A stretch of 64,000 nt of DNA from Schizochytrium sp. TIO01 (lineage: Eukaryota > Protista > Bigyra: Labyrinthulomycetes). Each line of letters opens with the position of its first letter. Within the stretch, counting starts at the first letter, position 1. The position numbers and the translations under genes are program-made. The notes below the pieces were generated by a model. That model was not told where the DNA came from. It did no database searches and worked only from the letters and a program-made list of their open reading frames with translations. The stretch lies in NCBI GenBank assembly GCA_004764695.1, contig SMSO01000032.1, positions 3,876,483-3,940,482 of the forward strand. Direction: 5' to 3'. Of this stretch, positions 41,037 to 61,807 are shown one piece after another.

Positions 41037-41985
41037 TGAATGAATGAATGAGTGAATGAACGAATAACTGAGGAAAAGAATTCTTAGACTCGAGGATATT
41101 CCGTAGCCGTGGATCATTTTTTCACTTGGGCATGCATGGTAGCGCGATCATTCTGCTCTTGGGAATGCCATGGATAGATAGATATAGATAGATAGGTCAA
41201 TGGCACGGCGCGTGATAATGGTTACTCCGTCCTGAGTTTGGCCCAGCGCAAGATATGAACAGATACCATCGATCGTTCTTGGTTTGGGAAGACATGTTTT
41301 TTGTTTTTTTCAACTTGTTGTTGGTTTTTATTCTTTGGCAATTGAAAAACTTTTTAGTTAGATTTGTTTTTCTCAACCTCTAGCACTAGCTTAGGGTTTT
41401 GATAGTCACAGAGAGAATATACCCTTTTAAAAAATAAAATAAAATAAAAAATAAAATAAAATAAAAGGAAAGGAAACAAACATCGTACACTGAGACAGTC
41501 AATCACAAATCCGCAACACCCGACACTTGCTCGATATCTCCCCGATCTCCACCCTCTTCGCGCCAGCACGAAGACAGATAGCACACGACGCTCGAAGTCG
41601 TGGCAATCCCCCAAGTCAGCTGCCGCGAGCTCTTCATCATTAACAGTAACAAGACAAGAGCCACTGCGAGTGTAGGCTGCTTGGCTTTTCTGATTCAAAC
41701 GCCTCATTGAAACGAGAGAAAAACCTATAAAGGCCCTCTTCGTGCCCGTTTGGAAGATATCTTTCGAAGCACCTAGATCAGAGTCAGCCGAGGGAGGAGA
41801 TTGACGACTTTGGATAGAATAAGCGCTGGTCTTGGAGAGACCCAAAACCAGTTCCTGTTTGATCGATCCCTGATCGATATTTCCGTTTCTGGTTGGTTTC
41901 CTTGCTTGCTGGCGCTTTTGCAGCGAGTACTCGAGGCTGTAAATTGCAATTAAGAAGTCAGTCAAAGCAAATAATTGTCGGCAAC

Positions 41986-44337
41986 ATGGACGAAGATCGC
42001 ATGGATCATGCTGTGGCAGTTTTCACAAGTGGTGGTGATGCACCAGGCATGAACGCTGTTGTTCGTAGTGTTGTGCGCAGCGGTATCCACCATGGTCGCG
42101 ACGTCTATGCTGTCTATGAGGGCTACCAGGGCCTTGTGGATGGCAAGGGCAAGATCCGTAAGATGGAGTGGAGTGATGTGCAAATGATGATCTACAAGGG
42201 TGGTACTGTAATTGGCTCTGCTCGTTGCATGGAGTTCCGCGAGAGAGACGGCCGTCTTCGTGCCTGTCAACACTTGGTGGAGCATGGCATTACCAACATC
42301 ATCTGTTGCGGTGGTGACGGCTCTCTCACCGGTGCCAACATCTTCAAACTGGAATGGCCTTCTCTCCTCGAAGAACTGCACAAGAATGGACGTGTCACTG
42401 ATGCACAGGCTGAGAAGTATGCCAACATTAACATCATTGGTTGTGTCGGCAGCATTGATAACGACATGGTTTATGATGGCACGCTCACAATCGGTACTGA
42501 TACCGCTCTTCACCGCATCGTCGACGCCATCGATGCCGTGCAAAGTACTGCCTCAAGCCACCAGCGCACTTTTGTACTTGAAATCATGGGCCGCCACTGT
42601 GGTTACCTCGCTTGGGCCGCTGGTGTCGCTACTGGTGCAGACTACATCTTCATCCCTGAGGCTCCTTCCAAGCACGATGACTGGGAGTCCGCGCTCTGTG
42701 CCAAGCTTGATCATCAGCGTAAACGTGGAGCTCGTCTCTGTACCGTTCTTGTTGCCGAAGGAGCCATCGACAAGCATGGTAAGCCCATCAAGACCGAGTA
42801 CGTACGCCAGGTTATTATCGACCGCCTTGGTCATGACACTCGCTCAACAATCCTTGGCCACGTGCAGCGTGGTGGATACGCTTCTGCCTATGATCGCTTT
42901 CTTGGCTCTGTTTCTGGCGCATTTGCTGTGGAGCGTCTACTCCGTACCAAGCCAGAGGATGCATCTACTATTGTTGGCGTCAAGGGATTTTCTGTTACTT
43001 TCAACCCGCTCGTGGAAACCATTGAGGCAACTCAGCAAGTGGCCAAGTACACGGCTAAGCTTGACTTCGAAAGTGCTATTCGTGCACGTGGTAATAACTT
43101 CCAGCGCTACTGGAACATTCAGAAGTCCATCAACCGTGATGTCGCAAAGCGTGAAGCAATTCCAGATGCTGGGAAGACAATTTGCATCATCTGTACTGGT
43201 GCCCCTGCAGGTGGTATGAATGCAGCTGTTCGTAGTGCCAACCACTTTGCTCTCAACCTGGGTTATGCGGTCTTTGCTGCTTCCGATGGTTTCCAGGGCT
43301 TCATGGACGGCCATATCAAGCCTCTCTCCTGGACTGATGTAATTGGCTGGGCGGGTGATGGTGGCACCAACCTCCGCACTGATCGCTCCACACCAACGGA
43401 TGCTGCTGCCATTAACAAGGTCTGTGAAGACTTCAAGATCGATGCACTTCTTGTTATTGGAGGTTTTGATGGTCTCATGGGCATCCACGATCTTCGTAAC
43501 AACATCAATGTGCCGGTTGCCTACGTACCAGCAACTATTTCTAATAACGTCCCGGGAACAGACTTCAGCATTGGTTCTGACACTGCTCTCAATGCAATTG
43601 TCAGTGCAATTGACACTTGCAAAAAATCAGCTGACTCTTCCAAGAGCCGCGTGTTCATTATTGAAGTCCAGGGCCGTTACAGTGGCTACTTGACAGTTCT
43701 TAGTGCCTTGGCCGCTGGCGCAGACATTGCTTACGTTCCTGAAATGGATGTGACTCTCCAGCAGATGCAGGCCGACATTGCGCGCATCAAAGAACAAATT
43801 GCAACGCACAACAAGCGCCACTTTGTTGTTGTTCGCAACGAATTCTGTAGCCCATCTTACGACCTTAATTTCATGGAGGTTCTCTTCCGTGAAGAAGGCA
43901 AGGGCTCCTTCTCTGTCCGTACTGTCAAACTCGGACATCTTTGCCAGGGTGACTACCCTTCGCCGCTTGACCGCATCCGTGCCACCACACTTGCTGCTGA
44001 TGCTACTGACCACCTCATCAAATGTATCAAGGGCCAGGCTACGGAGGACCTGACAAAGGTTGTTGTGGGTCTCTGTCACTCACACACTGTAATCCAGCCT
44101 ATGGCTAAGGCTTGTGCTGGTGCCGACTGGAAGCGTCGTGTCCCAGCTGATCGTCCGTGGGCTTGGCTTCTTGGTCTTCAGCAGTGCCTCTCTGGTTTTA
44201 TCACCCGTGAGGACAAGCAGACTGAGTACAACGAGACCGCGGGAGTAATATCCAACAACATTCTTTTGAATGGCGTGCCGACAGTTTGCAAGAAGGAGAT
44301 TCTGGACTCTTCCAGCGTTGATTCTCACTCAAAGTAA
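41986..44337 (+). CDS. PFK: ATP-dependent 6-phosphofructokinase, tandem-duplicated eukaryotic type
   Basis: N-half: TSGGDAPGMN, GGTVIGSARC, GGDGSLTGA, GSIDND, EIMGRHCGYLA, LGHVQRGG. C-half: GAPAGGMNAA, IGGFDG, PATISNNVPGTD, IIEVQGRYSGYL, LGHLCQG. First ATG at 41986. Confidence 0.95.
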   Translation: MDEDRMDHAVAVFTSGGDAPGMNAVVRSVVRSGIHHGRDVYAVYEGYQGLVDGKGKIRKMEWSDVQMMIYKGGTVIGSARCMEFRERDGRLRACQHLVEHGITNIICCGGDGSLTGANIFKLEWPSLLEELHKNGRVTDAQAEKYANINIIGCVGSIDNDMVYDGTLTIGTDTALHRIVDAIDAVQSTASSHQRTFVLEIMGRHCGYLAWAAGVATGADYIFIPEAPSKHDDWESALCAKLDHQRKRGARLCTVLVAEGAIDKHGKPIKTEYVRQVIIDRLGHDTRSTILGHVQRGGYASAYDRFLGSVSGAFAVERLLRTKPEDASTIVGVKGFSVTFNPLVETIEATQQVAKYTAKLDFESAIRARGNNFQRYWNIQKSINRDVAKREAIPDAGKTICIICTGAPAGGMNAAVRSANHFALNLGYAVFAASDGFQGFMDGHIKPLSWTDVIGWAGDGGTNLRTDRSTPTDAAAINKVCEDFKIDALLVIGGFDGLMGIHDLRNNINVPVAYVPATISNNVPGTDFSIGSDTALNAIVSAIDTCKKSADSSKSRVFIIEVQGRYSGYLTVLSALAAGADIAYVPEMDVTLQQMQADIARIKEQIATHNKRHFVVVRNEFCSPSYDLNFMEVLFREEGKGSFSVRTVKLGHLCQGDYPSPLDRIRATTLAADATDHLIKCIKGQATEDLTKVVVGLCHSHTVIQPMAKACAGADWKRRVPADRPWAWLLGLQQCLSGFITREDKQTEYNETAGVISNNILLNGVPTVCKKEILDSSSVDSHSK

Positions 44338-45052: not shown

Positions 45053-46297
45053 TTATGAGCCCGAAATGTGAAAGTGGTTGCGGTGGTAGTACATGATCAT
45101 CTCAACAAGCATCTTTTCAATGTTGTTGCCAATGCCAGGGAGGTGGCTAAGGCTGCCTGCAAACCGGCGCACAGCAGGGAGAGTCACACGTTCGAACAGT
45201 GGCGAACGCATAAAATAGAAGGCCAGCAATGTTCGGCGGCGGCGCATTTCATCATCAATAATCTTGATATCAGTTTCTGACGCCTTTGAGGAGCCGGACG
45301 ATCCAGAGATTAGTTTGTTAAACGCCTTGCTTAGTATTTCTGCAGGGGGGACATTCTCCTTTGTTTGAACAGCGCCTGGGGTGGCCACCATGCTACAACG
45401 CAACGAGAGCAGCTCCAAAATAAGTGAGAGCGCCCACGGCCGCCAGGTTGATTTCGCATCCTTCAAACGGTAAACCTGCATGATGTAAATCACAGGGCGA
45501 ATGATATGAAGGATTTCTCCAGCAGTCCTCAATGCTTGATCTTCAGGGCCAGCTTCAGATATAACAAGCGTCTTACTGCTGGACGAGCCTACACTTGTCA
45601 CAAGAGGAGACTCATGGACATTGTCGAATGATGCCAAAGCCGTAGAGAGAGGAATAGCTTTACCAGAACGACGACCCGCCCATTGTGGTGCAGTAATAGG
45701 TGTTGCATCCACCTTATCCTCAGGGGTCGTTGACTTTGTCGACGCCGCATCTGCATCCTCCTCCTTCTGAGAACTAGACTCTTCTACTCCATCAGTGATC
45801 TCGGTGATCGAGGCATTGTTTACTGAGCCCTTCGTGCTGCCTGCAGGCAAAGGTTGGAGCTGGCCACCATTGACGAGAACTGAAGCACGCTTAGAGAGCA
45901 TAAAAAGGATCAGACGGCCAATTGCTTTTATCCACTCAATGAGCAGAACAATTCGCTGCCGGGCACCATCACCCCGCAAAATACGCGTCAGCATCTCAAT
46001 CACGATCTCAGTTTGGCCAAGCAGGGTCAACACAATCTTGATAACACGAACAAGCGCTGAGCCTTGCTCTGTTTGACGAACTTGGTGGATAATCCGGCTG
46101 TGGTACAGGCTGACGAGACTCAGACCAGCATATGTGGATTCCTGGAAAACTTCTGAGTACTTTCCAAAGCGAGTGGTCGGCACCAACATGGTTACCAGTC
46201 GTCCCATCTCCTCCATACGCTTAACTTGCTCTGGGTGAGCACGGACCATCTCCTTGTATTGTGCCAGCATCGCACCGGGGCCCGTTTCTGACTGCAT
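45053..46297 (-). CDS. PEX16: Peroxisomal membrane biogenesis protein PEX16
   Basis: Y...V..H, ESTYAGLSLVSLYH, EIVIEM, IEWIKAIGRL, GRRSGK, GEILHIIRPVIY, WRPWALSL, EMRRR..LLAFYFMRSPLFE, matching the Pex16 motif order. Confidence 0.88.
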   Translation of the reverse strand: MQSETGPGAMLAQYKEMVRAHPEQVKRMEEMGRLVTMLVPTTRFGKYSEVFQESTYAGLSLVSLYHSRIIHQVRQTEQGSALVRVIKIVLTLLGQTEIVIEMLTRILRGDGARQRIVLLIEWIKAIGRLILFMLSKRASVLVNGGQLQPLPAGSTKGSVNNASITEITDGVEESSSQKEEDADAASTKSTTPEDKVDATPITAPQWAGRRSGKAIPLSTALASFDNVHESPLVTSVGSSSSKTLVISEAGPEDQALRTAGEILHIIRPVIYIMQVYRLKDAKSTWRPWALSLILELLSLRCSMVATPGAVQTKENVPPAEILSKAFNKLISGSSGSSKASETDIKIIDDEMRRRRTLLAFYFMRSPLFERVTLPAVRRFAGSLSHLPGIGNNIEKMLVEMIMYYHRNHFHISGS

Positions 46298-47205: not shown

Positions 47206-48387
47206 CTACTTGCGATCTGCAAGCAAATAACGTCGCCGGTGACGGCCAGGGGCCAGAGACGCATCTTGAAAAAATGTACTCTTGCTAAAATCATCACTTG
47301 AGTTGTCTTCATCTTCATGATTTTTTGAAGGGCTGCTCGTCGATTGCGATGCTTGCAGGAAACGGTCTTCAATATTATATGCGAATAGATCTTGCTCGCG
47401 CAAAGCGCGAAATGAACTCATTACATTTATATTTGGGTCGTTCTTTCCATCAAGATCACGAAACTTTGGTAGCATCGGGACCAAAGCGATGGCGCCCTGG
47501 GAAGAAGCTGTCTTGTTTTCATGTGGTGTCCTCGCAAATAAACGTACAGTCGGTGTCTCCTTGCCAGCATTTCTTTCTGAAGGAAGAAACCCAAGAGCAT
47601 TGAGGCGCCGCCTTGACCTACGTTGAAGCCGCTGTACTTTCTTTGCTACCTTGTCAGACTTGTGTGTAGCCAGACGATTCAAGGCCAATCGAGCCTTTTG
47701 CACCGCATTGTGGTCTGCATTTAGTTCTATGGTCTGTGCATCTGCTTCAGGAACCTTCTTCAGCTTTCTACCCCGTTTGCGTGGTTTTTTTGTAGGCTCA
47801 ATGGATGCAATACCTTGCTGTGAGAACGTCGTTGTTGGTTGCCCTTCAGCTTTTAGATCTGGATTTGGCTGTGGCAAAGTTGAGTTTGTAGTGGATCCTT
47901 GTTGCATTTGTATCGCATAATAAACATCGCGTGGTTGGTGCTGATACTGCAGCTCTAAAAGACGACTATATTTGGGCCAAGATGCGTCTCGAATTTTTTT
48001 GACTTGGAGAGACCTGTCCAGTCCCGATTTACTGTTATTCTTACGAGTCCCATGGTCAAAAAAGAATCGATCTCCACCTTCGCTTCTCTCGTCCTCCTCC
48101 AGAATCCGCTTGCCAGAACTCCTGGATACAAAGAGTGGAACGGTCTTCTGAGTCAAGATATCATCATCTGGTTCACAGCCCTCATATCGCCTCCACGTCT
48201 GGTCTTCTGAGTGATCTTGAGCCCTGTTTTGTCCAAATACGTCACCATTCTTCTCGAGTTTGATAGTACGTTTGCGGTATTTGCGGCGAGGGGCGAGATC
48301 ACTATCGGAGAGTCCAAGCGCTTCAGGATCTGCATACTTGCGAAGATCCTTAACGAGTGCGTCAAATGACTCCTCCGTTGTTGACAT
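47206..48387 (-). CDS. Hypothetical basic, probably disordered protein
   Basis: 393-aa ORF with ATG start and NLS-like basic clusters (KKPRKRGRK, RRSRRR); no recognised domain. Confidence 0.6.
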   Translation of the reverse strand: MSTTEESFDALVKDLRKYADPEALGLSDSDLAPRRKYRKRTIKLEKNGDVFGQNRAQDHSEDQTWRRYEGCEPDDDILTQKTVPLFVSRSSGKRILEEDERSEGGDRFFFDHGTRKNNSKSGLDRSLQVKKIRDASWPKYSRLLELQYQHQPRDVYYAIQMQQGSTTNSTLPQPNPDLKAEGQPTTTFSQQGIASIEPTKKPRKRGRKLKKVPEADAQTIELNADHNAVQKARLALNRLATHKSDKVAKKVQRLQRRSRRRLNALGFLPSERNAGKETPTVRLFARTPHENKTASSQGAIALVPMLPKFRDLDGKNDPNINVMSSFRALREQDLFAYNIEDRFLQASQSTSSPSKNHEDEDNSSDDFSKSTFFQDASLAPGRHRRRYLLADRK

Positions 48388-48916: not shown

Positions 48917-51900
48917 TCACTCGAACAAGGTATACAAAGGCCGCCTTTGAGTAGTATTGGCTACAGCAAAGTTTTGGGGTCGTTGGTACCTACGATAGAT
49001 CACATGAAGGTTTGGGCTCAGAGGAGCATCTTGTAAAGATCCATTCATACGTTCAATGCATGGTTGAAGAAGCTTAAGGGGGTAGCCGGTGACAGCTTCC
49101 ATGCGTTCTTGTGAAATCGGAGCCTCCTTCAGGAAAAGTGCATAAGTAAGAGCAGCTGCGGCAACGCAAGACGGCATTTGCGGAATAAAAAAGTGTTCTT
49201 GAAGTGAGAGCTCGCACAAATATTGAGCAAGAGCTTTTGTCTCTTCGCTCACCGTCATATTTGGAAGACTTTCTTTGCCACAACGGCGGTCTTCTTCGCT
49301 TAGCACAGTGCAGTGACGATCTTCCTCGGGGTCGTATTTGATTCGTACAACAAAAACATTGAGAAAGTCGATCACTGTTGGGACAGACATGTGAAAGTCT
49401 AGGGTATTAAGAACGTCTTCCTCAAGGCGCAGGACATCTTCAGCTTGGTACACCTTATCAGCACAGACAACAAGATCCTCTACACCAATGTAGGATACGT
49501 CTTCACATTTCGACGCAACATGTAAACATGTTGCTCCTAAAAGTTGAAAGCGATTGCGCTGCACACGCTTTTGAGCGAGATACCGGTCTGTGTAGTTTAC
49601 GGCCATAAACACGCTGCGCAAAGACATATCAAATACGTCAATCACCTCAACAAGCCAGTCTACTAACATTGAGCGATGCAAAGGCTGTAGCTCGCTTTGG
49701 CTTTGCACATTACCTACCGCAGGATCCTGCCGTTCATTTAGCGTCCGGGAAAAGGGGCCGCCATGGTGATTGTCAGCAGGAACGGGAGTGGGAAAAGGAG
49801 CAGGAACAAGAGCAGGGGCTGGCAGAGCAGGGGTTGGCACTACAGTATTGTTTTGTGGGGGCAACACAGTTGTCGGAGCTGCATCTGCTGCAGCAGCTCC
49901 AAGAGTGACTACAATTGCACGTTCACGATTGAGATTGTTGACAGGCTGCCCTGCTGTGCCATTGTTTCCAGCATCAAGATTTCTACCAGCACCTTGCTGA
50001 TGAGCCAGCCCAATAGGCGTTTGATTGTCTACTACATTACCGAGCGCACCAGCTGGCGCCTGTGTTGTTGTTGTTGGCATTACAGTTCTCAAATCAAACG
50101 ATGTTGCTGAAGGTGCCCGTTCCGAATCAGCGCCAGCAAGATAATCGACCAAAGGAAACATCTGAGCTTCCAGAGCCTTCAGGTAATGGTAATAACGAAT
50201 CAAGTAATTGATATCACCAAGGCCTTGACGTCCTGCTGAAGTATGAGAAGCGAGCTCATCAATGCGAGCGGAATACTTCCAACAGGTTGACTTTGTCACT
50301 TCATCGCCGTCGTTATGCCAGCTCAGCGAGTTTAGGTCAACGCGACCAGGAAACTCATTGTCATTACCAAATTCTGCATCTAGACTCGGCGTCGCTGCAG
50401 GCGAAGAAGAAGAGGAAGAAGAGGAAGAAGAGGAAAATGACGTTGATGCTGATGAAGATGATGATGGTAGAACGGGAGTAACGCTCGACCCCTTCACTAT
50501 TTGCTGTGCCTGTTCACCTCCAACTTCAGCTTTGGAAGCTGGGCGAATTGGATCAAAATAGGCATGGCGGAGTGCATCTTCAGCGGTAATGCGAGTGTTA
50601 GGGTTCACATCAAGCATTTTTGTCATGAGGTCCACACCATCCTTATCAAGATCTGGAACATGAACTTGAAGAGAGCGACGAGGCCATCGAGGGAACTCAG
50701 TCTGGTAGTTCGGCAGGCTTGAAAATCCTGGCCAAGATGAATTTGTAGGAGTACCAAGCTTTAAAAAGATTTGGAACAGCTGGTCGATCTCGCAAATTCC
50801 AGGAAACAGAGGCTTGCCAAGGATCATTTCGGCAAAGACGCAACCCACAGACCAGACATCGACAGCAGCAAAGTAGCGACCGCCCATGAGCACTTCAGGA
50901 GAGCGGTACCAGAGGGTTACGACCTCAGTTGTGTAGTTGCGAAGCGGAATCGATGTAGAACGCACCAAAGCAAAATCTGAGATGCGAATGTGGCCTTCCT
51001 CTGCAGCTTCAAGCATACGTTCATAGACAGCAGGATCCATTGCCTTTTCAGCCCCACCAGTTTCATCTGGTTTGTTATCAAGTTCTTGGCACCTGGGTGG
51101 ACGTTGATCAGTAAGGCCGAGGATGTAAGATAAAGAGTCGCGTTCTTCACGAACAGACACACACCGGCGTGAAGAGTTTGCAACGCGGGGAATGTCAACA
51201 AGCAAATGCTTCGGCTTGAGGTTACGATGCAAAACGCCACGTTGGTGGCAAAACGCTACACCCTGAAGAATCTGGTATAAAAATCGACGAATCAAAGTGG
51301 GGGGTAGCGGTTTACCTCCATCAGCATCGTTGTTTGGGTTAATTAAATCAAACAAAGACTTTTCCATGTAGCCAAAGAACAAAAACAGCTTATTGTCAAC
51401 AAGAGAGATGCGCTCCACCGTGGCAATATGAGGATGCCGTAGGCCTTGCAAAAATGCAAGCTCGCGAAGCATATAGTAAGGCACACCTTCGCCGGTTGGG
51501 TAAACACGTGCACGTTTCATAGCAAACAGTCGGCCGGACCGGCGGTGAAGAACTTTATAGCAACTACCTTCCGTACCTTGGTTCTTTAATCCAAGGTATT
51601 GAAACGAAGCATTTCTAATGGCGCCACTGGGATGGAAAGTAGGAAATCTACGCCACAGGCGAGAACTAGTGCAGAGCTGATTCCACAATTTAGATGCCGC
51701 CCACAGTCCCTCGATGGAACCTTCTTCGCCGAAGACGAGAAACGAGACGATTTCCATTTTAATATCTTCGAGAAGATCATCAATCCTAATTTTTCTACGC
51801 CGCGCTTTTGCTTCATCATTCTCCCTCCGCCTGCGTTTCTCATCGAGTTCATCGTCAAGATCCAATTTTGACGGTGTCTCAATCATTTTGCGTTTATGAG

Positions 51901-52009
51901 TCATTGGGCTCGAAAAAGAGTCAGCAACAACCCGTGTGGGCTTCGGTGGATTTGTTTGCATGGGCTGGTTGCGTGGTGAAGCAGATCCATCGCCACAACC
52001 ACTATCCAT
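48917..52009 (-). CDS. F-box + CDK1/2-like (probable pseudokinase) + A/B-type cyclin fusion protein
   Basis: Single 1030-aa ORF. F-box-like IDDLLEDIKMEIVSFL...AASKLWNQLCTSSRLWRRF (about 51647-51784). CDK domain (about 50555-51604): EGVPYYMLRE, HRNLKPKHLL, DFA, YTTEVVTLWYRSPE, FPGICEIDQLFQIF. Cyclin N-helix YYHYLKALE (about 50140-50206) and cyclin box HRSMLVDWLVEV...DRYL...FQLLGATCLHVASKCED...LEEDVLNTLDF...YLCELSL (about 48960-49699). Confidence 0.9.
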   Translation of the reverse strand: MDSGCGDGSASPRNQPMQTNPPKPTRVVADSFSSPMTHKRKMIETPSKLDLDDELDEKRRRRENDEAKARRRKIRIDDLLEDIKMEIVSFLVFGEEGSIEGLWAASKLWNQLCTSSRLWRRFPTFHPSGAIRNASFQYLGLKNQGTEGSCYKVLHRRSGRLFAMKRARVYPTGEGVPYYMLRELAFLQGLRHPHIATVERISLVDNKLFLFFGYMEKSLFDLINPNNDADGGKPLPPTLIRRFLYQILQGVAFCHQRGVLHRNLKPKHLLVDIPRVANSSRRCVSVREERDSLSYILGLTDQRPPRCQELDNKPDETGGAEKAMDPAVYERMLEAAEEGHIRISDFALVRSTSIPLRNYTTEVVTLWYRSPEVLMGGRYFAAVDVWSVGCVFAEMILGKPLFPGICEIDQLFQIFLKLGTPTNSSWPGFSSLPNYQTEFPRWPRRSLQVHVPDLDKDGVDLMTKMLDVNPNTRITAEDALRHAYFDPIRPASKAEVGGEQAQQIVKGSSVTPVLPSSSSSASTSFSSSSSSSSSSSPAATPSLDAEFGNDNEFPGRVDLNSLSWHNDGDEVTKSTCWKYSARIDELASHTSAGRQGLGDINYLIRYYHYLKALEAQMFPLVDYLAGADSERAPSATSFDLRTVMPTTTTQAPAGALGNVVDNQTPIGLAHQQGAGRNLDAGNNGTAGQPVNNLNRERAIVVTLGAAAADAAPTTVLPPQNNTVVPTPALPAPALVPAPFPTPVPADNHHGGPFSRTLNERQDPAVGNVQSQSELQPLHRSMLVDWLVEVIDVFDMSLRSVFMAVNYTDRYLAQKRVQRNRFQLLGATCLHVASKCEDVSYIGVEDLVVCADKVYQAEDVLRLEEDVLNTLDFHMSVPTVIDFLNVFVVRIKYDPEEDRHCTVLSEEDRRCGKESLPNMTVSEETKALAQYLCELSLQEHFFIPQMPSCVAAAALTYALFLKEAPISQERMEAVTGYPLKLLQPCIERMNGSLQDAPLSPNLHVIYRRYQRPQNFAVANTTQRRPLYTLFE

Positions 52010-55400: not shown

Positions 55401-56963
55401 ATGTCTTCGTCAGGATGGTTCGACTTTTGTAAGTGGGCTAGCGAACAGCAACAGGTTGAAATTACAAACTTCTTTCCGACAGCGACGACAGCGACGACCT
55501 CAACTTCGAGAGAACTCTGTAAAGCGCATCAAAAACGGTGCAGCTTTGCAGTGATTACTCAAAGAGAATTTGCTGAGCGAGAAAGTAGAGGCAGTTTGTG
55601 ATTTTCTAGGAAATGAAATGTTACGAAGCTAGAGAAAAGTGCAATGCATGGGGTTTTTGCAGGAAACAAACGGCGTAGCTTCATCACATTTCTTCGCGAG
55701 TTTCATTTCATGTGTTTGTACTAAATGATTGTACTACTACGCAAGGATCTTGATGAATAGGAAACTAACGGCCAGTGGGGGTTGCGAATTGCTTTGCTTG
55801 TGATGCTCTGGGGCATTCTGTATTTTTTTAACTCTATTCAGACCAAGCGCCTGCGAGTAAGGCCATGTTCTTTAGTGTCGGTCTTGGAACGATTGCAAAT
55901 GCATACTTATCAAAGACACCATGGACAGGCTACGATGTAACTGCGTTTTCAGGAGTGAAACTACATCGTGTCCTAGCTGGTCAGTTTGTGTTCGGAGGAA
56001 TTGGCGAGCTCGTGTTAGGCATGGGTCTCATCTATCATTTTAGAATGTTTGAGCGACGCATGGGTTCATCCCGCTTCCTTTCCTTTACCACAATGTCTAC
56101 GTTGCTATCAATCACTTTCCAAATGGTAGTGCTCATCATGAACCCCGGATTCGATGGTCCCTCCTTGACCCAAGTTGCAATTGGCCCGTATAGCTACATT
56201 TTTGCCCTCTTTGTGCATTATTTTGTTTATGTGCCGAAGTTACAGAAATATAGGTTTCTTGGCGCAGAGTTCTCTGAAAAGACCCTCATGTATCTTTGGG
56301 GTAGCCAGCTTCTTCTTGCTCAAGGCAACAACTCAATGATCGCCTCGTGCTGTGGCCTCATAAGTGGGCTGCTTTGTCTTAGCGAGAAGCTCCCCTTCAG
56401 TAAATTCCATTTGCCAGAACCTGTTCTTCGCTTTGGAAAGGACTATGTTGCCCCCCTCTTTGCGAGCCGCAGCCCAGCAGAAGTCGCTGCTGAGCGCTCA
56501 CGGCGTCAACAGCAGGCTCTCGCAAGAATGGGCCTTGACCCAGCAACAATTGCAGTAAGTTTAGCTCACCTCGTATAACAGAGATGGAAAAATTATCGAA
56601 GCCAACATGCATGGTAAGATATTTGGCGCATGCTTGACACAGACGTAGAAACTAACGTACGCGATGTAAACACGCGAAAATTTTATTCGTATATAGCAAA
56701 TGCAACAAGAAATGCAGGGTCAGCAACAGCAACTCAATGCGCAAGGATACCAAGTTGATCAACTTCTTCCTGGACCTGGGTTTCTTAATGGCCCGGGTAT
56801 GGGAGGCCCTGGTTTCAATGCTGCTCCCCAGGCACTTCCAGAGCCATCCGAAGAAGATATTGCTCGCCTCACGGAAATGGGTTTTGATCGCGAACGCGTG
56901 GTGACTGCTCTTCGTAGGTGTCACAACAATGTCGCTCGCGCTACTGAATCCCTGCTCATGTAA
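55401..56963 (+). CDS. UBAC2/Dsc2-like rhomboid pseudoprotease with C-terminal UBA domain; exons 55401-55428, 55842-56554, 56697-56963
   Basis: Splicing gives MSSSGWFDFYQAPASKAM... Rhomboid-like core IYHFRMFERRMGSSRF, GPYSYIFALFVHY, FSEKTLMYL. UBA domain PSEEDIARLTEMGFDRERVVTALRRCHNNVARATESLL. Both introns have GTAAGT donors and restore the frame. Confidence 0.88.
55429..55841 (+). other. Intron 1 (phase 1) of the UBAC2-like gene
   Basis: GTAAGT donor; pyrimidine-rich ...ctctattcAG acceptor; frame restored. Confidence 0.8.
56555..56696 (+). other. Intron 2 (phase 0) of the UBAC2-like gene
   Basis: GTAAGT donor, ACTAAC branch point at 56651-56656, TAG acceptor; joins the membrane domain in frame to the UBA exon. 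Confidence 0.85.
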
Positions 56964-57901: not shown

Positions 57902-59125
57902 ATGTCCACAATCGATGGTCAACGGTCCATGGCTACAGCACTGGCAGCAACAACAGGCGCACTGAAAGACAGAGATCTAGGGGCGTATCCGATATCTAAA
58001 TATACAAGCTCCTTAAGATCATCTGCTTCATCACACGCGATAAGCTCCTATTCAAGCTCGGATGTTCGTGCGCAATGCACCGATGGCGTCCAACGATGGA
58101 ATCTACGTGACTTTGAGATTGGCAAAGCATTAGGTAGAGGAAAGTATGGAATCGTCTATCGGGCCAAAGTCAAACGTACCAAACAAATTGTTGCTTTGAA
58201 AGTACTAGATAAGGAACAGCTTCAGCGCGACGATATGTATTCGCAGCTAAGGCAAGAAGTTGAGATTCACTCCAGGCTAAAACATCCAAACATACTTCAG
58301 CTGTTTGGCTATTTTTATGATCCTAAACGGGTCTATCTTATCCTAGAGTATGCTGCAGGAGGAGAACTCTATAAAATTATGAAGAAACAACCAGACGGCA
58401 AGTTCGATGAGAAAACAGCAGCACACTACATAGCGCAGCTCGCCAGTGCTCTGAGTTATTGCCATAGTTTTAACGTAATCCATCGCGACGTAAAACCTGA
58501 GAACCTTTTGATTTCACAGGATGGCTTGCTGAAGCTTGCCGATTTTGGTTGGGCTGCGCATGACCGCCGCGGATACAATGGATACATGAGTACAGCTAGA
58601 TTGCATGTACGGGGAGGGATTAGCGCATGTCCTGAAGAGAATGACCGCATGGCAAGCATAAATCATGGAAATCGCCGTACAACGATGTGTGGTACGCTAG
58701 ATTATCTTGCACCTGAGATGGTACATGGAAAAGCATATGATGAGACTGTGGACAACTGGACAGTAGGCGTTTTGGCTTACGAGCTTTTGGTCGGTGTACC
58801 TCCCTTCGAACCTTCACCTGCAGATGAGATGGCAAGTGCTGGAGCCATGGCAGGGACCCCGTACAGTCATCTGAATACACCAGTTGGAGGAAGTGCGCAT
58901 TACAGTGGACTCCTTGCTACACCACAGAGTTGTGTTTCAGATAACAATGAAGCAACCTTCCGCAAAATTAGCTCTCTTGACTACCGCTTTCCAAGTCATG
59001 TAAGTCCGGAGGCAAAAGATATGATTCGTCGCCTTTTACACAAGCATGCAGAACGCAGACTTAGCCTTTTCGAGGTGCTGCGTCATCCATGGATTCAACG
59101 GCACATTGAACTTCCCGAAGCATGA
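57902..59125 (+). CDS. Aurora kinase with two large loop insertions
   Basis: WNLRDFEIGKALGRGKYG, VALKVL, QLRQEVEIHSRLKHPNILQLFGYFYD, HRDVKPEN, DFGW, RRTTMCGTLDYLAPEM, C-terminal RLSL..VLRHPWI. Confidence 0.92.
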   Translation: MSTIDGQRSMATALAATTGALKDRDLGAYPISKYTSSLRSSASSHAISSYSSSDVRAQCTDGVQRWNLRDFEIGKALGRGKYGIVYRAKVKRTKQIVALKVLDKEQLQRDDMYSQLRQEVEIHSRLKHPNILQLFGYFYDPKRVYLILEYAAGGELYKIMKKQPDGKFDEKTAAHYIAQLASALSYCHSFNVIHRDVKPENLLISQDGLLKLADFGWAAHDRRGYNGYMSTARLHVRGGISACPEENDRMASINHGNRRTTMCGTLDYLAPEMVHGKAYDETVDNWTVGVLAYELLVGVPPFEPSPADEMASAGAMAGTPYSHLNTPVGGSAHYSGLLATPQSCVSDNNEATFRKISSLDYRFPSHVSPEAKDMIRRLLHKHAERRLSLFEVLRHPWIQRHIELPEA

Positions 59126-59353: not shown

Positions 59354-61807
59354 TTATTTCATTTTATAGTACTTGTTTGTTTTCGGGCAGAAATAGCATT
59401 CGAGAATAGGATCGAAAACGAGATCAAGTTCTCCTCCGGCTTCATCTCCATTCTCGCATCCTTCATTCGCTTCACTCACTTTTGAAGAGGCACTTCGACT
59501 GCTGCTTTTCTTCTTGATTACAGGTTCTTTGCTTTCCTCTTCCACGTCATCATCACCACGAATTGGTGTTGCAAGATGATCCCCGTCTTGGTTCTTTACC
59601 TCAGCTGTGGAGCTTAGTTGCTTAAGCGCCCCAGAAATTGTCGACTTTAGAAATTGGGCGCTTAATTCATCAATAGGGTTTTGTGCATTTGTGTCTGATT
59701 TTACTTTTGATGAAGACTTGGAGGTCGAGGTTGGAGTAGCACGACTAGCGGAAGAACGATGTGAGCTCAGAACGGCCTCCTCCTCCTCGTCAAGACGTGC
59801 TTCCATTTTTGCAAGTTCCTCGCGCTCTCGCGCTAGCTTAACACGGAGATCGCTTTTGATCGGCGAGTCTAATGTTCCAGACAACTCAGCAAGGTCACCA
59901 CCATCCAACTCAAAGTCAGCTTCAGCAGGTTCTCCAAGTGAAATTTCATCATCCTCATCCAAGACATCTCCCTCTCTGTCAGCTAGTGCTTCATGACCTT
60001 CTCTTACGTCATGGTCCAGCTCATCTTCGTCTTGTGTGAGATTGAGATCCTCGTTGTACACTTCACTTCGTTCGAAACTTGTGTTACTCGCAATTTGCTG
60101 TTCGCCATCGTTCTCAGCATAAATCCCGTCGTCATCATTGACGTTAACGTTACTGTCATCATCGCTAAGTTCACTGTAGTTATCATCTTGCTGGTTAGCT
60201 GCTGGGAGTCCCTCATACAAGTGTCTTTGATTATGTAGGAAGGTAGATTCTTCCTCCTCTTCTTCTCTCCCCTCTCCCTCGTTCTCCGACTGAGTATCAT
60301 GATTGTCGTGAATATCAACATAGCCAGAAGAAGTAGTTGGGTAATTTTTATGGCTTTCTCCAGGATGTTGACTTTGAAATTCCTTGCCCACCGGTGAAAG
60401 CGGGGAGTTCGCAACGTATTCCTCATAGACATGTTCAGCTTCGCATTGCACTTGGTCGCACGTCTTCTTCTGACGAAGCGTGGAGCGTGAAGAGCTCATG
60501 CTTGCCCTGGCACTAATCGGTTCATTCTCTTGATTAGATGAGCGCGGACCTGCAGAGGACTTTTGCGAGTGCATGCTTCGGGAACTAGGTTGCCCACTTG
60601 ATGGCCTTTCCTCACGTATTGGTAACTTCAAGGATAACTTACGAGGGGATGGTGTACCTCCTTTTGCAGCCTTAGCCCGCGCGATGGCAGGCAAACTTCC
60701 AATGCGGAGACCTGAACGGCGTGCAGACGGTGGTCCATCCTCCTCTACGCGGCCAAAGTTCGATGCATTATCCTCCTCATCTGTAGACGCGCCTCTTAAG
60801 CGCCTGACACTAGTTGGCGTGGCAGATGCTTGCTTGGGGGTACCTGAAGATAAAGGTGTGTTCGTTTGAGGTACAGAGCCGTGCTGATTATTTCCACGTC
60901 GAGTCTCCAAAAGCCGTCTTGTGCGTGGGCTTTCAGTAGACATCCTAGTTCCCAGCGTAGAGTTACTTCGCGCCGACGCTGGAGGTCCAGCCGGTGACGG
61001 TCTCGATCGCAGAAGCTTTTTCGCTTGTGTTCTAGTTTGCGACATCTCACTCCGAGGCGAGTGATGTTCAACTCCATGTACGCTCTCCCAGGCGTAGACG
61101 GCGGTCATTGTGAAGAAAACCGTTGGTGGGTTCACGACAATTGTACTCGGAAATTGAAGCTGTCGCGGAATTGGTGCAAGTATGCGACTCCCACTCTCGA
61201 TACCATGCATTCCTGGTGGTTGGTCCTTCAACGTGAACAGTCGACGAGCTCGGCAAGTGCCATGCAAAACGATCTGCTCAAGGGCTCTGAAGTTGATACT
61301 TGGAAAATTAGAAGATACTATCTCTTGCATGTCCATGCAAAGCGTAAGCCAGCTGCCACGCGGAACTACTGTGTCATCGCGCAAGTCTTCGCTCTCGCCA
61401 AATTGTGCGTCGTAAACTGCTCCCAGCGGTAGCTGCACGTGCAAAGGGTGCGCCGTGATATTCCGAAATGCGGAGGAAATCACAAGGCGACGTCGTGTTC
61501 GTTGTGAGTCTGTGATAGTTAGCTCGATGCCGAAAGGATCTGCAGATGCTGGAAGAGCTATTTGCATGGCCAAAAATCTCTGTGTGAGTCCAAGGCTCTT
61601 TCGAGTGGCGGTTTTGCCTGGAAATTCAACTTTGCAGGTGGGGCCTCCATCGCAGACCAGAGCGTAGCTTTTAATATCCTTGTCAAATTCTCTACGAACT
61701 CTCCCACTCACGCCAACACCTTGTTTCCGAAGAGGGTCAGTGCCCTGTGCAGAGAAGATTTCGCACGAAGGCCCTCCTTGAAACCGCGAGGCTCCTGCGG
61801 TGCTCAT
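59354..61807 (-). CDS. CFAP20DC: CFAP20-domain-containing protein (CFAP20DC/C3orf67-like)
   Basis: N-terminal FQGG..EIFSAQG.DP, KSLGLTQRFLAMQI, F.IEL.ITD...RRRL, HVQLPL, W.TLC.D, CRARRLFTLK. Long disordered middle. C-terminal LDLVFDPILECYFCPKTNKYY motif typical of this family. Confidence 0.85.
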   Translation of the reverse strand: MSTAGASRFQGGPSCEIFSAQGTDPLRKQGVGVSGRVRREFDKDIKSYALVCDGGPTCKVEFPGKTATRKSLGLTQRFLAMQIALPASADPFGIELTITDSQRTRRRLVISSAFRNITAHPLHVQLPLGAVYDAQFGESEDLRDDTVVPRGSWLTLCMDMQEIVSSNFPSINFRALEQIVLHGTCRARRLFTLKDQPPGMHGIESGSRILAPIPRQLQFPSTIVVNPPTVFFTMTAVYAWESVHGVEHHSPRSEMSQTRTQAKKLLRSRPSPAGPPASARSNSTLGTRMSTESPRTRRLLETRRGNNQHGSVPQTNTPLSSGTPKQASATPTSVRRLRGASTDEEDNASNFGRVEEDGPPSARRSGLRIGSLPAIARAKAAKGGTPSPRKLSLKLPIREERPSSGQPSSRSMHSQKSSAGPRSSNQENEPISARASMSSSRSTLRQKKTCDQVQCEAEHVYEEYVANSPLSPVGKEFQSQHPGESHKNYPTTSSGYVDIHDNHDTQSENEGEGREEEEEESTFLHNQRHLYEGLPAANQQDDNYSELSDDDSNVNVNDDDGIYAENDGEQQIASNTSFERSEVYNEDLNLTQDEDELDHDVREGHEALADREGDVLDEDDEISLGEPAEADFELDGGDLAELSGTLDSPIKSDLRVKLAREREELAKMEARLDEEEEAVLSSHRSSASRATPTSTSKSSSKVKSDTNAQNPIDELSAQFLKSTISGALKQLSSTAEVKNQDGDHLATPIRGDDDVEEESKEPVIKKKSSSRSASSKVSEANEGCENGDEAGGELDLVFDPILECYFCPKTNKYYKMK

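Follow-up and report, generated by a model that had tools for sequence, protein, structure and literature searches.

A Schizochytrium member of a stramenopile protein family that joins an F-box-like region, an apparent CDK pseudokinase and a cyclin in one chain

The locus described here lies in a 64,000-nucleotide stretch of Schizochytrium sp. TIO01 (contig SMSO01000032.1, positions 3,876,483 to 3,940,482; hereafter the window), in which one open reading frame at 48917..52009 on the minus strand encodes, in this order, an F-box-like region, a CDK1/2-like kinase domain and a cyclin (the parts of this gene are given below in window coordinates, all on the minus strand, together with their amino-acid (aa) positions). 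The frame runs from an ATG start through 1030 codons to a stop without interruption, the open frame upstream of the ATG continues for only 3 codons, and at the window's 45% GC the chance probability of a stop-free run this long is ~7e-26. A sequence-only reading of the window had placed all three domains within this single frame, and so they are found, with Pkinase, Cyclin_N and Cyclin_C recognized by Pfam. The fusion gene is present as a single copy in the 64-Mb genome, which encodes ordinary CDKs and cyclins, and also a Cks, elsewhere. On the evidence below, the gene is almost certainly an orthologous member of the F-box/pseudo-CDK/cyclin family conserved across stramenopiles, carried by a labyrinthulomycete genome of thraustochytrid-like type.

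Structurally, the central domain (aa 135–485; 50555..51607) belongs with the cell-cycle CDKs, with a Pfam Pkinase match of 8.9e-49 that is split into aa 135–272 and aa 338–485, and with human CDK2 and CDK1 as its nearest solved relatives (6e-79). Catalytically, it departs from them at one site after another. The catalytic loop reads HRNLKPKH (aa 261–268; 51206..51229) against HRDLKPQN in a HMMER alignment to CDK2, so that the catalytic Asp has become Asn and the Mg-binding Asn has become His, and the DFG motif reads DFA (aa 345–347; 50969..50977). The glycine loop is NQGTEG against GEGTYG of CDK2, with Glu at the position of Tyr15 and with the first Gly of the loop also replaced, both in the window copy and in the family consensus, and the cyclin-binding PSTAIRE helix carries PYYMLRE, in which the Arg and Glu are retained. 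Measured against the active CDK1/2 class, the protein has the CDK fold and the activating T-loop Thr (T360), and it lacks the HRD Asp, the KPxN Asn, the DFG motif and the PSTAIRE sequence. Thus, of the "full CDK1/2-like kinase fold" called by the sequence-only reading, the fold stands and the catalytic equipment does not: HRD has lost its Asp, KPxN its Mg-binding Asn and DFG its Gly, here and wherever these motifs are readable in the family.

These replacements are strongly conserved. Across an alignment of 53 homologue sequences (alignment A1, the basis of all conservation counts given here), Asn263 occurs in 52, His268 in 51, GTE in 52 and PYYM.RE in at least 50, whereas DFALVR is invariant (DFA in 53/53); the window protein shows all four motifs of the resulting signature (HRN[LI]KPKH, DFAL[VA]R, GTEG and PYYM[LM]RE), each of which is constant or almost constant in the family. 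A motif scan of 155 fetched proteins found HRN and DFA together in 99, and HRD was read in no family member, only in unrelated kinases that were among the weakest matches. Other sites are kept, namely the ATP-binding Lys (K165), the alphaC Glu (E183), the Asp of DFx and the T-loop Thr (T360, invariant), along with the segment TLWYRxPE and, in the C-lobe, SEIDQLF, which we take to correspond to the Cks-binding GDSEIDQ motif of CDK1/2. By these sequence features the domain looks like a catalytically dead pseudokinase, and the pattern is that of a domain selected for its shape and surfaces, not for its chemistry. The same retained Lys, Glu, Asp and Thr could also be taken to indicate an active kinase with unconventional chemistry, which would make the protein a constitutively cyclin-activated CDK linked to an SCF ubiquitin ligase, and some kinases without canonical residues do stay active. 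However, the protein lacks the catalytic base and the Mg-binding Asn, as well as the Gly of DFG and the first Gly of the glycine loop; the first three of these are replaced (nearly) invariantly across the 53 members, and we consider activity of this kind decidedly improbable.

N-terminal to the kinase, aa 74–124 (51638..51790) were assigned to an F-box-like region from the orthologue alignment, hhalign and a model of the complex with Skp1. The segment is in register with a family block whose consensus runs D..L..FSFLV, then VSK.W..L, then LW. Scanned separately, 36 of the 53 aligned members match PF12937 (E <= 0.01; best 8.5e-12), and 23 of the 53 match PF00646 over the aligned region (E <= 0.01); the members passing the F-box profiles include P0003 and P0006, which are close relatives of the window protein. 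When the window and Hondaea regions were compared by hhalign with the oomycete F-box block, the match had an E-value of 1.6e-4 and a probability of 50%, and when the F-box region alone was searched against solved structures (PDB), it gave chance-level matches only, with E above 1. The AlphaFold2 (AF2) model places short helices in this region at aa 81–92, 98–105, 107–113 and 116–121, with a predicted local distance difference test score (pLDDT) of 79–92.

A canonical Skp1 of 172 aa, in which Pfam recognizes both Skp1 domains, is encoded in the same genome. Modelled in complex with it, aa 62–135 scored 0.83, and none of three controls exceeded 0.01; the mark for such scores is reached by 51 of 78 solved complexes and by 2 of 108 mismatched pairs, and, as many Skp1–F-box complexes have been solved, a pass is to be read as likeness to an F-box rather than as proven binding. 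Contact agreement between runs was at least 82% and partner pLDDT at least 64, and the modelled interface sets residues 73–110 of the fusion protein on the C-terminal helices of Skp1. The Skp1 docking for which the sequence-only reading had proposed a structure prediction is thus reproduced in a model, and the F-box-like motif that it had called draws support from the register with passing orthologues, the modelled helices and this docking, although the window copy misses the Pfam cut-off. The Skp1 genes themselves appear to form a small tandem cluster: the canonical gene (L001:1147-1665 (+), contig C33, about 1.65 Mb) has a second, divergent Skp1-like open reading frame of 175 aa (L003:1144-1671 (+)) ~5 kb away, with a third, weak Skp1 match between the two.

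The C-terminal part of the protein is a cyclin of A/B type, as the sequence-only reading had it, with an N-terminal helix (aa 598–625; 50135..50218, from AF2 and the alignment) and both cyclin folds (aa 771–1020; 48950..49699). Pfam Cyclin_N (3.9e-32, 111.1 bits, aa 761–875) and Cyclin_C (4.7e-16, 59.3 bits, aa 921–1020) are, like Pkinase, well clear of their cut-offs, and among solved structures cyclin A2 is the best match (2e-28), with cyclin F (4.8e-18) and cyclins D, B and E behind it. The ASK..E cyclin-box signature is kept (S833, K834 and E836 invariant, A832 nearly so), and at the MRAIL hydrophobic patch HRSMLVDW (an RxMLVDW form) stands in place of MRAILVDW, with Arg, Leu and Trp retained, Met changed to His and Ile changed to Met. 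Two long flexible segments interrupt this half of the chain. The linker between kinase and cyclin (aa 486–597; 50219..50554), mostly disordered in the AF2 model, contains the Ser-rich run noted earlier, at about aa 515–536, and a low-complexity, disordered insert of 140 aa (aa 631–770; 49700..50119, from AF2 and sequence) separates the N-terminal helix from the first cyclin fold.

Taken as a whole chain, the AF2 model (built on alignment A1) averages a pLDDT of 75 and reaches a predicted template-modelling score (pTM) of 0.76, with 257 of the 1030 residues (25%) below pLDDT 50. Since the pTM, which is normalized to the whole chain, equals the ordered fraction, the model must position all three domains confidently relative to one another, and we infer that F-box, kinase and cyclin form a predicted rigid assembly within one chain, in line with the intramolecular CDK–cyclin pairing that the sequence-only reading had suggested. 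In Foldseek, cyclin-bound CDK2 chains came out on top (TM 0.89–0.91, root-mean-square deviation (rmsd) 2.2–2.5 A), and free CDK2 chains fitted more poorly (TM 0.82–0.84, rmsd 4.7–4.8 A), which is weak evidence that the modelled kinase adopts the cyclin-engaged conformation.

Evolutionarily, the protein has many relatives. Database searches, in which the 8000 candidates sharing most words were scored, returned the kinase-then-cyclin order in >100 proteins, most of them also with a precomputed F-box-like match, and the kinase stands N-terminal to the cyclin in all aligned homologues. Oomycete members match at E about 1e-180 with 42–49% identity over the aligned domains, and come from Phytophthora, Peronospora, Plasmopara, Bremia, Albugo and Pythium as well as Lagenidium, Aphanomyces, Saprolegnia, Achlya and Thraustotheca; among ochrophytes the family was found in the brown algae Choristocarpus and Discosporangium, and in Chrysoparadoxa, Tribonema, Phaeothamnion and a parmalean alga. 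The database matches listed included no named member from ciliates or apicomplexans; with scoring limited to the candidates just described, this does not imply absence from those groups. Many oomycete members are named "Cyclin-F" in UniRef, entries from Achlya and Thraustotheca bear the name "cyclin-dependent kinase with F-box domain", and one Plasmopara entry lists kinase and F-box domains.

This distribution also bears on whether the gene could be an artefact, whether through misassembly into a chimera, through the merging of two genes or as a pseudogene in decay. Conservation across the family effectively rules out a chimera or merged genes. The 1030 uninterrupted codons, the 66% identity over 99% of the query length to the Hondaea fermentalgiana homologue, the recurrence of the same architecture in >100 proteins and the dozens of positions that are invariant across the family all speak against an artefact; several of the matches, moreover, are open reading frames from MMETSP transcriptomes, which indicates a single mRNA in relatives, and the fusion has been confirmed by reverse-transcription PCR (RT-PCR) in P. 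infestans (PMC3019232). We regard the chance of an artefact as negligible.

Some database entries stand apart from this picture. Two family entries are filed outside the stramenopiles, under the dinoflagellate Durusdinium trenchii (P0005) and the chytrid Batrachochytrium salamandrivorans BASA81 (P0127), and both are likely contaminants of those assemblies, P0005 because it has the labyrinthulomycete-specific insert and N-terminal motif described below. In two further kinase-then-cyclin fusions, P0078 (937 aa) and P0086 (692 aa), GTYG is retained along with either DFG or HRD, and unlike the family they look catalytically intact; they may be genuine active fusions or may result from merged gene models.

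Part of this family has already been published. In P. infestans, Judelson & Ah-Fong (2010, PMC3019232) found four CDKs, PITG_21617 among them, that carry Cyclin_N and Cyclin_C at the C-terminus. They noted a conserved Asp-to-Asn change in subdomain VIb and suggested that the proteins may be inactive; related genes were reported from other oomycetes, ciliates and Theileria, and were not found in two diatoms. With the kinase followed by Cyclin_N and Cyclin_C and the same change in subdomain VIb, these proteins belong to the family of the window protein, although P. infestans has four such genes and the Schizochytrium genome one, and although members from the labyrinthulomycete clade have in addition the insert in the kinase, extended disordered linkers and a conserved motif near the N-terminus. 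The F-box is not mentioned in that paper (0 occurrences), and full-text literature searches returned no paper on the three-part architecture and no functional study, PMC3019232 covering the kinase–cyclin part only. The suspicion in the sequence-only reading that CDK–cyclin fusions might already have been noted in stramenopile surveys is therefore borne out by the P. infestans report, and its suggestion that the three-part architecture was undescribed does not hold, given the same order in >100 stramenopile proteins, some of them named for the F-box, and the kinase–cyclin fusion published in 2010. With the fusion known since then and the F-box present in database names, the protein is not of a new kind.

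Several features are particular to the labyrinthulomycete clade or to this locus. Between kinase strands beta7 and beta8 lies an insert of 65 aa (aa 273–337; 50999..51193), portions of which are modelled at high pLDDT; at this site the orthologues of the labyrinthulomycete clade (the window protein, P0002–P0010 and P0037) carry 51–149 aa, and other members carry 15–21 residues. Near the N-terminus, the motif GSASPxNxP..PPKPxRVVA (aa 7–30; 51920..51991) is common to the window protein, Hondaea and the relatives P0003–P0007, and its conservation in the orthologues of this clade favours M1 over M17 as the start, the database prediction P0001 starting at M17; the motif is possibly a phosphosite or a degron. 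Directly before the F-box, a basic helix with Arg/Lys clusters (aa 54–73; 51791..51850, from the AF2 model and sequence) is possibly a nuclear localization signal. Immediately downstream of the fusion gene is a 393-aa open reading frame with no Pfam match (47206..48387 (-)). The other neighbours are unremarkable: on the plus strand PFK (41893..44337), a rhomboid (55865..56578) and a Ser/Thr kinase (57902..59125), and on the minus strand Pex16 (45053..46297) and a protein of 817 aa (59354..61807) whose N-terminus carries a CFA20 domain.

Among known systems, SCF-Skp2 with Cks1, CDK2 and cyclin A is the complex that ubiquitinates p27 on Skp1–Cul1 (related PDB entry 7b5l), and by analogy it would be the nearest functional parallel, since there too an F-box protein, a CDK and an A-type cyclin form one assembly that presents a CDK-bound protein. 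In that assembly, though, the polypeptides are separate and CDK2 is active, whereas in the window protein they are fused and the CDK looks dead. By architecture, the nearest parallel would be the cyclin F of animals (FBXO1), which acts as substrate receptor in SCF-cyclin F and likewise carries an F-box N-terminal to a cyclin in one polypeptide but has no kinase, where the window protein has a 350-aa kinase between the two. Orthology with animal cyclin F was considered and is unsupported, the cyclin part being nearer to cyclin A2 than to cyclin F and the kinase intervening, and the likeness is more likely to reflect convergence than common origin. A covalent CDK–cyclin link forming a stable one-chain module is also familiar from engineered fusions, which are common tools, such as fission-yeast Cdc13–Cdc2 (PMC4319789); these synthetic proteins place the cyclin ahead of the CDK, are active as kinases and lack an F-box.

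Based on these findings and parallels, we posit, with moderate confidence, that the protein is an SCF substrate receptor in which a dead CDK sits on its own cyclin and binds partners rather than phosphorylating them. Mechanistically, the dead CDK domain would be permanently seated on the cyclin domain of the same chain, giving a binding module that has the shape of a CDK–cyclin pair and is incapable of phosphorylation, and the F-box would tie this module to Skp1 and hence to the Cul1-based SCF ubiquitin ligase. A protein docking on one of the CDK–cyclin surfaces, which are the hydrophobic patch of the cyclin, the T-loop with the substrate groove and possibly Cks bound to the C-lobe, would then be captured and ubiquitinated instead of being phosphorylated. 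A bolder form of this proposal, in which the substrate-trapping receptor is a one-polypeptide counterpart of Skp2–Cks1–CDK2–cyclin A that selects CDK-docking proteins for destruction across stramenopiles, is put forward tentatively, as a possibility that falls somewhat short of probable.

A different use of the same module has to be weighed here. F-box proteins are commonly turned over via SCF, and some act with Skp1 outside SCF, so that the fusion could instead be a non-degradative decoy or scaffold, in which the pseudo-CDK–cyclin stoichiometrically soaks up or organizes CDK regulators (inhibitors, Cks, Wee1/Cdc25-type enzymes or the CDK-activating kinase, CAK), and the F-box serves for the protein's own turnover or for a Cul1-free partnership with Skp1. 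Such a role would accord with the conserved pseudokinase signature and the retained regulatory surfaces, and with the suggestion of Judelson & Ah-Fong that the cyclin domain may govern the stability of the protein (PMC3019232). However, the F-box is conserved together with the other two domains across deep stramenopile lineages, for which a canonical receptor role is the simplest account, and we consider a decoy or scaffold rather unlikely.

The receptor proposal, in turn, has several points against it. In the window copy the Pfam F-box-like profile scores only 11.9 bits (E 0.2), where the cut-off is 24.3, the Skp1 model may owe its pass, which concerns F-box likeness and not binding proper, to memory of solved Skp1–F-box complexes, and the intrachain CDK–cyclin interface is deduced from the pTM and from the conformations of the best-matching CDK2 chains. 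The experimental record for the family is limited to RT-PCR in P. infestans. Finally, the genome yielded no match to a CDK inhibitor of CDI/KRP type, a weak negative for a domain that is short and fast-evolving, though one that touches an obvious class of candidate substrates.

CDKs and cyclins are normally separate proteins, so that the kinase is turned off once its cyclin is destroyed. A natural fusion of the two that is conserved, with a kinase that lacks its catalytic residues and with an F-box on the same chain, suggests that a CDK–cyclin pair has been reused as a recognition device for ubiquitination. Databases have shown the family since about 2010, yet the full-text searches turned up no functional study of it. 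The present value lies in a sharpened, testable hypothesis rather than in a discovery. If confirmed, it would represent a new class of pseudokinase function and would provide a handle on cell-cycle control in the stramenopiles, a group that includes oomycete plant pathogens, brown algae and oil-producing thraustochytrids.

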